This document shows, piece after piece, positions 52,501 through 56,383 of a stretch of DNA of 64,000 nt (position 1 is its first letter; the number at the start of each line of letters is the position of its first letter). A program made the translations under genes and the position numbers. The notes beneath the pieces are model-generated. The model was not told the origin of the DNA. It saw only the letters and a program-made list of their open reading frames with translations, and did not search any database. The DNA lies in NCBI GenBank assembly GCA_037447605.1, contig CM074818.1, positions 2,182,617 through 2,246,616 on the forward strand. Reading direction: 5' to 3'. Source of the stretch: Zygnema circumcarinatum SAG 698-1b (taxonomy: Eukaryota; Plantae; Zygnematophyceae).

Positions 52501-55500
52501 CGGCCAGGGGGGTCTCCCCCACCGCCAGGACGTCCCCCGCGGCTACATGCGGCAGAGCGTAGCTGCTCCGTTGGACCCAACGGAGGGCGGAACGGGGCAT
52601 GGAGGGGGGGGGGGNNNNNNNNNNGGGGGGGGGGGGGAAGAGATGGAGAGGTACTGAGTTTTGGTTTCTGAAGGAAGGTATTGAATCTGGCAAGAGGGGG
52701 GTTGGAGGGGGTCGGGGGGTACTGAGTTTGTTGTGAAGGGAGGTGTTTGTTGTGGAAGAGGGGGGAGGGGGGAGGGGAGGGAGGTGTGTACTGAGTTTGG
52801 GTTATATTGGGAGGTATTTAGTATGGAAAGGGAGGTAGAGAGGAGGAGGGGGCGGGGGGGGGGGGAAGGGAGAAGGTGGAGAGATAGTAGGTTTGTGTTC
52901 TGGCGGGGGATATCGGTTCTTGGGTTTGAGGGGGCGAGAGAGGAGGGGGAGAGAGATGGTAGAAGAGGCGAAGGGGGGGAGGGAGGGAGGGGAAGGATAA
53001 GGTTGGGATGCTTTTTGGGGTCAAAGGTGGGTTTGAGGGAGGAAGTGAAAGAGGTGAGAGAAAGGAGGGAGGAGAGGGAGAGGGAGAGGGTGAAGGGGCG
53101 TACTTTCGTATGACATCGAGTGGGTCGTCGAGATGGCAGAGGAGGTGCGTTGGGATAGGCAGGATCTGCACGCCCTCCTTCGTTCTGCGGGAGGGAGGGA
53201 GAGAGGAGGGAGGGAGGGAGTTGCCGCAGGGTGGAGGGAGGAGTGGAGGAGACAGGGTGGGAGAAGGGAGGGAGAAAGGAGAGAGGGAGGGAGGGAGTGC
53301 GGAAGGTAACAGAGTGAGAAAGGGGGAGAAGGCTTGAGGAAGTGGGAGAGGCAGAGAGGGAGAAAAGGGCGAAGAGAGAAGAGAGAAGAAGAAAAGGGCG
53401 TGGACGGTCAACTTGAGGGAGAATGACAGAAAGAGAGAGGGATACAGAATGACCGAGAGCGAGAGAGAAAGTGCGAGAGAAGCAGCGAGAGAGAGAAACA
53501 GGGAGAGAGAAAGAGAGGTAGAGTGTAAAGTAGGGAGAGAGAGGAAAGCGGAGAGAGAGATAGAGAGCGCGAGGGGAGAGAGATAGTTTCTGTTACTCAC
53601 TTACTTGCGCCATCGGAGATTCGAAGTCGACTGCGAAAATTTTAGGGGCAGAACGACCTCTTGGGAATGCTCCGTACGACCGTGGGGCCCATATGAGAAA
53701 TATTTTACGTCCACGCGGGCAGACTGAAATTTTCTCCTTGCAAAAGAAGGGGGGAAAGTAGGGGGAAAGAAGTGTTTAATGGGGGTGAAACGAAAAAGAG
53801 AGAGATTTAATTACATATGAGAACTGGAAAGAGAGGCCAAATGTCTCCCACCTCTCCCACCTCTCCCACCTCTCCCACCTCTCCCACCTCTCCCACCTCT
53901 CCCACCTCTCACATCTCTCACACCACGCCCACTTCTCCCTCTCAGCATTAAAACTACTTTTGCTGTAAATCTGAAAACCTAAGATCGTACCCGAAAAGAA
54001 TGTCCCAAATCTTTCGAACACACCAAACTGCGATATTTCGAAAAACGACTGTTCACACAAAGGTATGGAGTTCAGGAGGAACAGTAAAGGATGATATCGA
54101 GATATACTGAAGGTATCGAGATATACCTTCAGTTTTTCTAGGGATGCGCCGTCGCTTGCCCGAATGTCTAGAACCACCTGCCGCTCTCCAGGGCAGGGAG
54201 AATTTAAAAAAGGAAGATAAATAAAAATAAACGAAAGGAAAACGAAAGAACGAAAGAAAGAATGAATGAATTGTGGGTTAATGAGTGTGCAGTTTTTGAC
54301 AAAAATAGGTGAGGGTGAAGAAGGAGGCGTGGAGAAAGAAGAGAGAGAGAGGGGAGGAGAGTGAGGGGCGAGAGAGGGGAAGGAGAGAGCGAAATGTGGA
54401 TGGGAGACTGGGAGAGGGAGGGAGAGGAGAGTGAGACAGAGGGAGAGAGGAATGAGAGAATGAGGGGTATGCGAATGGGCAAAGAGAAAGTGAGAGAGAA
54501 AAGAGAGAGAGAGAGAGAGAGACCTCAATGGCCGTTCCCTCTCCCGCCCGGGTAATATATGCACGCCAATATCCGTCTTTCCGAGGGGGGGGAGATCCAC
54601 CCGGATGATTTGGTATGACCTGCCCGTTCTCCCGGGCAGTCCCAAAAAATAAATTATACAAAGAAACTGTGCAGGATGGCTTGGTCAAGATGGGTCAACG
54701 AATTTGATTTATACATTACTTTTCAACTTTCTTTTTTCAAATGTTCGAAAAAATCGGAACCTGAGTCTCGGCAGTAATTCCGTTCAGACTGTCGTCAGAA
54801 AGAAGGATCGCAGAAGCTTCCAATTCCGGCACAAAGAGTTCTTTCCGGGCAGAAATGTTTAGAAACCTGCCCGGGATCAAAGAGAGAGAGACAGAGAGAG
54901 AGATAAAGGTGGGGGAAAGAGAGAGAGAGAGAGAGGGAAGGGAGGAGAGGAAGGGCAAGAGAAAGGAGAAACGAGAGAAAGGGGGGAGAGGAGGGGGAGG
55001 GAAAGAGAGAGGGAGGGAGAGAGAGAGGGAGCGGGCGAGAGAGAGGAAGAGAGGAGAGAGAGTGACGAGGAGAGAGAAACGTGAGAGATAAAGGAGGGAG
55101 AGAGGGAGAGAGAAAGGAGAAAAGAGAAAAAGGGAGACAGAGAGGAGTCGCATCATCTCCTTCAGGATTCAACGATACTGATTTCAATCAACACTCTTTA
55201 AGAGTAAGGGTTCAGAACAAAAGAAATTAGGGCGTGAGGAATTTAGGGTTTATGCAACAAAATGAATTCAATCAAACAAACACTCTTTAACTCAATATTT
55301 TTTTTAATAATTTTTTAATAGTGATATTTCGAGGAGGCGTACTTCATCGATCCACGCAGACGGTAATGATTGGAGTCGCGAACTTCCCACGACCACTTGC
55401 CACGTGTCAGCATTAAGCCATCGCCGGGATTTTTCTGCAAGATTGAATTCGACTCAGAATCTAAGGTGAAAAAACAAATCACACGGAAGTTGAATAATTC

Positions 55501-56383
55501 CTTTACAACTTTAATAGCAAACAGAATAAAACTTGGGGTGAAACTCTAACACTTCCTCCAACCCTAACTCTAACCCTAACTCTGACCCTGACCCTAGCCC
55601 TGACCCTAACCCTAACCTTAACCCTAACCCTAACCTTAACCCTAACCCTAACCCTAACCCTAACCCTAACCCTACCCCTAACCCTAACCCTAACCCTAAC
55701 CCTAACCCTAACCCTAACCCTAACCCTAACCCTAACCCTAACCTTAACCCTAACCCTAACCCTAACCCTAACCCTAACCCTAACCCTAACCCTAACCCTA
55801 ACCCTAACCCTAACCCTAACCCTAACCCTAACCCTAACCCTAACCCTAACCCTTTACTCTAACCCTAACCCTAACCCTAACCCTAACCCTAACCCTAACC
55901 CTAACCCTAACTCTAACCCTAACCCTAACGCTAACCCTAACTCTAACCCTAACCCTAACCCTAACTCTTACCCCTAGCCCTAACCCTAACCCTAACCCTA
56001 ACCCTAACCCTAACCCTAACCCTAACCCTAACCCTAACCCTAACCCTAACCCTAACCCTAACCCTAACCCTAATCCTAATCCCTAATCCCTAACATTATG
56101 CTACAGCCTGCACCTGCATGGAGCGAAGGCGCTGCGCCTCCTGCGACAGCCATAGCTCATTGCTCATTCCGTAAGTCCCCTCTGCTGCCCACCCGCCCGC
56201 ATCCGCCGCCATGGCTTCCCCCGCAGTAGCAGAGCAGCGAGCAGGGGGCCGCAATGCTTTGCCACGTGGCTCCTGGAGAGGCTTCGGGAAGGTGGAGCGC
56301 GGAAGGAGGGGGGCGCACGACACGTGGACACCGAATGCAGCGCTCTCGAGACGCCACGTGGCGGCCTGCAGGAGGGAGGCCAT
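49506..56383 (-). CDS. Nuclear, probably plastid-targeted homolog of the cyanobacterial F420-0:gamma-glutamyl ligase-like (CofE-like) family; 15 exons, 460 aa
   Basis: Exons 56383-56114, 55434-55343, 54866-54761, 54619-54524, 54177-54127, 53723-53605, 53184-53104, 52562-52388, 51791-51727, 51366-51318, 51190-51125, 50735-50693, 50545-50490, 50094-50037 and 49561-49506. Total 1383 nt, every junction GT-AG and in phase. Motifs I recognise from the cyanobacterial family: [85 protein letters not shown] and [16 protein letters not shown]. Confidence 0.85.
50279..50445. repeat. (CT)n microsatellite; similar long (CT/GA)n tracts at 3915-4065, 5845-5970, 8690-8790 and 60885-61165
   Basis: Read directly from the sequence; all are intronic or near genes. 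Confidence 0.95.
55561..56093. repeat. Interstitial telomere-like array (CCCTAA)n, about 88 units, inside intron 1 of the F420-ligase-like gene
   Basis: About 530 bp of ccctaa with scattered variants (ccttaa, ctctaa, ccctga, ccctag). The intron spans 55435-56113. Confidence 0.92.

Follow-up and report, generated by a model that had tools for sequence, protein, structure and literature searches.

Interstitial telomeric sequences (ITSs), that is, telomere-type tandem repeats at non-terminal sites, are already known from introns of human and Caenorhabditis elegans. In human, 31% of ITSs are intronic (PMC7215372), and 63% of the interstitial telomeric sites of C. elegans are intronic, a twofold enrichment (PMC6800518). 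Plant genes carry short telomere motifs, termed telo-boxes, in promoters, leaders and first introns, where TRB proteins bind them (PMC10167121). In the genome of the streptophyte alga Zygnema circumcarinatum, simple repeats (6.4%) and miniature inverted-repeat transposable elements (MITEs) are reported to be the main repeat classes (PMC11096116). We analyzed 64,000 nucleotides of the genome of Z. circumcarinatum SAG 698-1b (assembly GCA_037447605.1, contig CM074818.1, positions 2,182,617 to 2,246,616; this whole stretch is called the window below). Here, the first intron of a nuclear minus-strand gene of cyanobacterial descent, labeled F420-0:gamma-glutamyl-ligase-like, consists for 79% of its length of an array of the hexamer TTAGGG, read as the G strand on the sense strand. 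The array is an ITS by its non-terminal position, with unique flanks and with flanking exons that are spliced together in RNA. We consider it probable that this single-copy telomere-like repeat grew in place and persists as tolerated intron filler that is spliced out.

Tandem Repeats Finder delimited the array at window positions 55560-56094 (period 6, 88.5 copies, 92% matches, 1% indels, score 901). The plus-strand unit is AACCCT, so the G-strand hexamer is read in the direction of the gene, on the minus strand. A unit-by-unit reading of the 535 nt gave about 71 perfect units (426 nt, 80%) and 77 GGG runs, and three long pure blocks comprise 15-17 units each. Interruptions are dispersed (TTAGAG six times, TTAAGG three times and TTAGCG once), both ends are frayed into the variant units ATTAGGG, TCAGGG and CTAGGG, and the 7-mer TTTAGGG accounts for none of the 88 units. 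The array is the only one of its type in the 64-kb window. No inverted repeats or duplications were found flanking it, so that it is without a transposon signature, and there is no N gap within or beside it, the nearest being at 52615-52624.

The intron that holds the array is a spliceosomal GT-AG intron of 679 nt in phase 0 (56113-55435), with GT at 56113-56112 and AG at 55436-55435. On the minus strand between 55000 and 56700, an ATG at 56383 opens a 270-nt exon that ends in ..TCCATGCAG at 56114; then follow GTGCAGGCTGTAGCATAATG, the hexamer run and 125 nt of unique sequence ending in ..TCAATCTTGCAG, and exon 2 opens with AAAAATCCCGGCGATGG at 55434. The array begins 20 nt past the 5' splice site and ends 125 nt ahead of the 3' splice site. 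Scored against eight homologs, 56114/55434 ranked first among the in-frame GT/GC..AG pairs near the matches. Both exons are in frame, and homologs align gap-free over the junction, with the Marchantia protein (P0003) placing residues 42-66 on exon 1 and residues 66-98 on exon 2. The first-pass annotation, made from the sequence alone, had described a 679-bp phase-0 GT-AG intron between in-frame exons, containing about 530 bp of sense-strand (TTAGGG)n; the sequence, the homologs and the RNA junction reported next all agree with this description.

Splicing of this intron was observed in RNA. The comparison with sequencing runs covered the stretches 56100-56800 and 55435-55559 beside the array. 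By word share, the exon-1 stretch was matched in 20 sequencing runs of one organism. Six DNA runs (X1-X6), with 69-182 million letters of contigs, contained 0.97 of its words, and fourteen further runs (X7-X20), with 23-47 million letters, contained 0.77-0.87; one of these fourteen is labeled "RNA?", four are labeled "DNA?" and nine carry no label. The stretch 56100-56800 was then compared with the contigs of two DNA runs (X1 and X3) and two RNA-type runs (X15 and X7). In X15 (2019), a 632-nt contig lies on 56114-56423, and in X7 (2024), a 1121-nt contig lies on 56114-56449, at depths of 97 and 49. Both diverge from the reference at 56114 with TGTCAGCATTAAGCCATCGCCGGGATTTTT, which is the exact reverse complement of 55434-55405; 30 of the 30 loose-end letters are the start of exon 2, and the junction 56114^55434 is thereby found twice, in RNA-type runs that are independent of each other. 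The mature mRNA is without any array, the whole intron having been spliced out.

In each of the DNA runs X1 (2019) and X3 (2023), 56100-56444 is covered by a contig of 392 nt whose depth (20 and 46) is that of a single copy, and these contigs extend 47 nt past 56100 toward the array. All words of the unique 3' part of the intron, 55435-55559, were present (share 1.00) in six DNA runs, which come from three studies, and none (0.00) in the listed RNA-type runs, including X15 and X13, which both contain exon 1; no abundant retained intron is therefore seen. Depth refers to the exon-1 flank, and both flanks are present in the DNA runs of the three studies. Exon 1 is thus used, the array-bearing intron is removed, and one molecule carries both flanks of the array, in the order given by the assembly. 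With exons 1 and 2 in one transcript, a scaffold join at a chromosome end is ruled out here. The first-pass annotation had listed this junction among its checks and had named two refuting outcomes, a scaffold joined at a real chromosome end and transcripts that begin past the array without the exon at 56383-56114. The junction was found, neither outcome was, and the RNA contigs use the exon.

Two further observations concern the same runs. DNA word depth was 20 and 46 up to about 56411 and then 8,000-137,000 over 56420-56800 and upstream; since this high-copy repeat breaks the RNA contigs, the transcription start is undefined. Three RNA runs of 2017 (X22-X24) that carry the same species label were without any exon-1 words, and two organisms may share one name.

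The joining of exon 1 to exon 2 implies transcription through the array by RNA polymerase, so the primary transcript must contain about 70 perfect UUAGGG units. In this respect, it resembles telomeric repeat-containing RNA (TERRA) and ITS-derived RNA, with long UUAGGG tracts in the TERRA sense and predicted RNA G-quadruplexes. In contrast to TERRA, which is transcribed from the subtelomere toward the chromosome end, the array is situated between two spliced exons, and the intronic repeat is removed, with no RNA contig containing the unique 3' part of the intron. The suggestion that the gene yields a TERRA-like RNA therefore holds for the UUAGGG composition of the primary transcript; no stable RNA of this kind was seen, the 3' part of the intron being at zero in the listed RNA-type runs.

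Compared with the intronic ITSs of animals, the array is alike in being a tandem telomere-type hexamer that sits at a non-terminal site in a protein-coding gene, within an intron and not in the exons. It differs in its host, a streptophyte alga, in its extent, which is above that of typical short ITSs, and in its unit, which is probably not the repeat of the lineage itself, a 7-mer being expected. Like plant telo-boxes, it is a telomere-like motif in a gene of the plant lineage, and the RPL9 gene of the window has an intron that starts with 7-mer motifs; telo-boxes, however, comprise one to two 7-mer units, as against 88 hexamer units here. In small vertebrate introns, G triplets act as intronic splicing enhancers, and C9orf72 carries a G-quadruplex repeat in its first intron. 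The array shares with both systems dense sense-strand GGG runs just past the 5' splice site, a first intron and a G-rich non-template strand, whereas most introns of the F420-ligase-like gene are without G runs.

A further parallel is found in the same gene. Its ten confirmed introns (within 49562-56113) are all GT-AG and 127-679 nt long, and nine of them consist mostly of one strand-skewed simple sequence, a 141-nt intron being unskewed. On the sense strand, C and T predominate in six of the nine (C 36-53%, G 5-9%), and three are G-rich: intron 1, a GA-rich intron at 50489-50095, and the last intron, at 50036-49562 (G 55%, C 4%). A neighboring hydrolase gene also has introns filled with (CT)n. 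Intron 1 therefore has the appearance of the simple-repeat intron fillers of zygnematophytes, eight of the nine other confirmed introns each being mostly one strand-skewed simple repeat, and differs from them in that only its unit is identical to a telomere repeat. The window contains six 10-N gaps (52615-52624, and at 22646, 32525, 39310, 44208 and 49102). The first of these interrupts a poly-C tract within an intron of the F420-ligase-like gene, and the assembled lengths of some simple repeats are accordingly uncertain.

The orthologous introns, which the first-pass annotation had proposed to compare, separate the age of the intron from that of the array. In Marchantia (L001), the identical residue closes exon 1, ..RLRTNQ|K, and the intron after it is an ordinary one of 542 nt; in Closterium (L002-L004), the junction reads ..LTVQ|GTGGGG.., in phase 0. 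Position and phase of intron 1, after a conserved ..RL(R/L)xxQ, are thus common to the window gene, Marchantia and Closterium, and no telomere-like run was found at any of these Marchantia and Closterium loci. With position and phase shared and the array absent, the intron is old and the array is lineage-specific. The Closterium intron 1 nevertheless opens with dense G runs, and another intron of the Closterium ortholog (L002, 7091-18413) is filled by an (GAGGTGTG)n array that spans 11.3 kb, comprises about 1,416 copies and is free of C on the sense strand.

From these features, we infer that the array expanded in place from a telomere-like seed, by replication slippage or unequal exchange, and that its growth would parallel that of the (CT)n, (GA)n and G-rich arrays in the other introns of the gene. 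It may have been tolerated since it is located between the splice signals, with intact unique ends of 19 nt (5') and 125 nt (3'). The G triplets near the 5' splice site may mildly aid intron definition, and the transient pre-mRNA or lariat is predicted to be able to form RNA G-quadruplexes.

Several points weigh against growth in place as neutral filler, or against details of it. Slippage is deduced from the anatomy of the array and its context. The start of the array only 20 nt from the 5' splice site is a hint of something beyond neutral filler. A second hint is that hexamer cores in four gene spans, counted after masking of the main array, were in sense orientation 47 times and in antisense orientation 6 times, although these counts are clustered and not independent. 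The orthologs compared are distant ones (59-62% protein identity). The length and unit number of the array are as assembled, short-read contigs stopping inside it, and contig data lose rare forms, so that low-level intron retention is possible. Finally, the organism may, though improbably, have a hexamer-making telomerase.

The hints of function bear on the alternative that survives best, which we nonetheless regard as unlikely: that the array is a selected cis-element, either an intronic splicing enhancer or a platform of G-quadruplexes, R-loops or Myb-type (TRB) proteins that tunes expression. The first 100 nt of intron 1 contain 12 GGG runs and no CCC, which is the position expected of a G-run enhancer, and the array starts close to the 5' splice site. 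ViennaRNA predicted a drop in folding energy of the intron RNA from -72 kcal/mol without quadruplexes to -265 kcal/mol with them, with about 15 three-layer quadruplexes. In the RPL9 gene (plus strand, 16463-17350), the intron begins AAG|GTAGGGTTTAGGG at the 5' splice site, followed by degenerate 7-mers in sense orientation. In an RLCK-type kinase gene (plus strand, 23478-25440), the introns begin with G runs followed by 7-mers, again in sense orientation, and the orthologous Closterium intron likewise starts with dense G runs. Against this alternative, six of the ten confirmed introns are C/T-rich and G-poor in their 5' part; these too are presumably spliced, without any need for G runs. The motif counts come in clusters and are not independent events, any functional role is putative, and expression of the gene speaks against Polycomb-type silencing by way of the repeat.

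A broader form of this idea extends beyond the single locus. Telomere-like G-strand sequence, hexamer and 7-mer together, could be a systematic, sense-polarized building block of introns and leaders just past 5' splice sites, kept by selection for intron definition or by transcription-linked repeat growth. We put this forward as a doubtful generalization. If it were true, ordinary genes would jointly make a large pool of nuclear RNA containing UUAGGG and UUUAGGG, and the present array would be one clear, RNA-verified instance of a sense-polarized intron architecture. If such polarity held genome-wide, it would be relevant to intron definition and growth in zygnematophytes and to the sources of telomeric-repeat RNA. 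Independently of this, the locus shows that an intron can consist to four-fifths of G-quadruplex-prone repeat, beginning 20 nt from the splice site, and still be removed by the spliceosome.

A second alternative is that telomerase added repeats at a double-strand break in the intron before the ends were rejoined. Telomerase-repaired breaks are the classical origin of the short ITSs of mammals, and the mechanism has been documented in primates and rodents (PMC2246262, PMC7215372). In favor of such a repair, the array is clean, keeps its telomere-type unit in a single orientation and lacks target-site duplication and inverted repeats. However, the zygnematophyte telomerases that were tested make the 7-mer (PMC3622300), the organism groups with the zygnematophytes, and not one of the 88 units is a 7-mer. 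Moreover, an array of 535 nt is rather long to have been inserted in one step, both of its ends fray in the manner of a microsatellite grown by slippage, and non-telomeric simple repeats fill the other introns of the gene. The healed or patched break that the first-pass annotation had suggested is thus disfavored by the missing 7-mer, by the frayed ends and by the nine other introns, eight filled with simple repeats and the 141-nt one unskewed; we judge this origin to be quite improbable.

A low probability also attaches to the alternative that the hexamer is the telomere repeat of the species itself, after a switch like those in Chlorokybus, Dunaliella and Asparagales, with the array as an ordinary interstitial copy. 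Hexamer telomeres have several origins among green algae, one of them in a streptophyte alga; those listed are from Chlorokybus, Prototheca, Haematococcus and Dunaliella, with no zygnematophyte among them (PMC8287931). In telomeric repeat amplification protocol (TRAP) assays, in contrast, Z. circumcarinatum, Micrasterias and Mesotaenium, representing three branches of the class, synthesized the Arabidopsis-type 7-mer (PMC3622300). On telomeres of zygnematophyte genomes, this TRAP survey of 2013 was the only literature found, the Zygnema and Spirogyra genome papers making no mention of telomeres. The window itself contains 74 copies of the 7-mer, about 10 times the chance expectation, as short degenerate runs, which would fit old interstitial copies of a native 7-mer telomere. 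In a maximum-likelihood protein tree, the window sequence fell outside a well-supported embryophyte clade, in a grade with Mesotaenium (the nearest, 69% identity) and Closterium, and apart from Klebsormidium, Chlorokybus and Mesostigma, which places the organism among zygnematophyte-like streptophyte algae. The hexamer is therefore probably not the product of the organism's own telomerase. Since the tested zygnematophyte telomerases make the 7-mer, the array says little about the true telomere, and the proposal that it reveals the telomere motif is disfavored by the tree placement, the assays and the 7-mer runs of the window alike. An Rfam scan of the whole window gave no match, and hence no telomerase RNA or other RNA gene was found there. 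Short runs of 7-mer and 8-mer telomere-like units also occur at 35300-35370, just 3' of a minus-strand gene of about 250 amino acids (35537-36307), and in two duplicated segments at 38460-38540 and 40470-40545; they are in sense orientation for that gene.

An artefact, be it a misassembly joining two chromosome ends or vertebrate contamination, is hardly credible: the scaffold is a draft with 10-N gaps and short-read contigs end inside the array, but the exons on either side are spliced together in RNA of two independent runs, both flanks occur in DNA runs of three studies (the exon-1 flank as a single copy, in a contig continuing toward the array), homologs are collinear across the site and no N gap is nearby. 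For order and orientation, a chromosome-end misjoin or contamination is refuted by the spliced RNA and the DNA flanks. For annotators, it follows that such arrays in the Zygnema genome are not scaffold-end artefacts. The coordinates of the locus are collected in Table 1.

Table 1. Features of the array-bearing gene and its surroundings, in window coordinates
Feature	Position	Strand	Basis
Very high-copy repeat (MITE-like) abutting the 5' untranslated region	56420..56800	.	DNA word depth jump
Exon 1, coding part: ATG at 56383, 90 codons, presequence-like N-terminus, then conserved tail	56114..56383	-	Homologs and RNA contigs
Intron 1, GT..AG, phase 0, absent from mRNA	55435..56113	-	Sequence and RNA-contig junction
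Unique 5' intron end (GTGCAGGCTGTAGCATAAT), 5' splice-site region ahead of the array	56095..56113	-	In DNA contigs; RNA contigs end at 56114
Hexamer array, 88.5 units, about 71 perfect, frayed ends	55560..56094	-	Tandem Repeats Finder and unit reading
Unique 3' intron part, T-rich tract, TTGCAG acceptor	55435..55559	-	Present in DNA runs only
Exon 2	55343..55434	-	Homologs and RNA contigs
Exons 3 and following (5' boundary 53729 uncertain; alternatives 53736, 53733, 53723)	54866-54761, 54619-54521, 53729-53605	-	Homolog alignment
Further exons	53184-53104, 52562-52388, 51791-51727, 51366-51318	-	Homolog alignment
Last exons	51190-~51113, ~50557-50490, 50094-50037, 49561-~49507	-	Homolog alignment
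Remainder of gene, with one or two small exons unplaced in each of 54520-53737 and 51112-50558	49507..55342	-	

The host gene was traced through its relatives. With one exon of 58 amino acids (52561-52388) as the query, 60 relatives were gathered from a representative library, and tblastn with these relatives recovered thirteen minus-strand exon matches in collinear order, from 56188 to 49515. Pfam returned no match for the gene's raw open reading frames, as the exons are too short. Against PF01996 (CofE; gathering threshold 25 bits), the algal and plant homologs scored 16.5-16.7 bits or not at all, and scores of 19.6 and 25.4 bits were obtained with the cyanobacterial homologs, over profile positions 2-63 of 218 only. 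The name F420-0:gamma-glutamyl ligase comes from the automatic annotation of homologs, so that "F420-ligase-like" serves as a label with a weak Pfam match, for a putative function. The nearest non-plant homologs are cyanobacterial. Among the 120 homologs listed of 3,181 matches, neither the window's own protein nor an ortholog from the same genus was found, and the top identity to the window was about 65%; the gene may be unannotated or fragmented in its own genome. A Mesotaenium gene model (P0074) starts MQ|KNPGDG.. at the boundary of exons 1 and 2 and is probably without exon 1.

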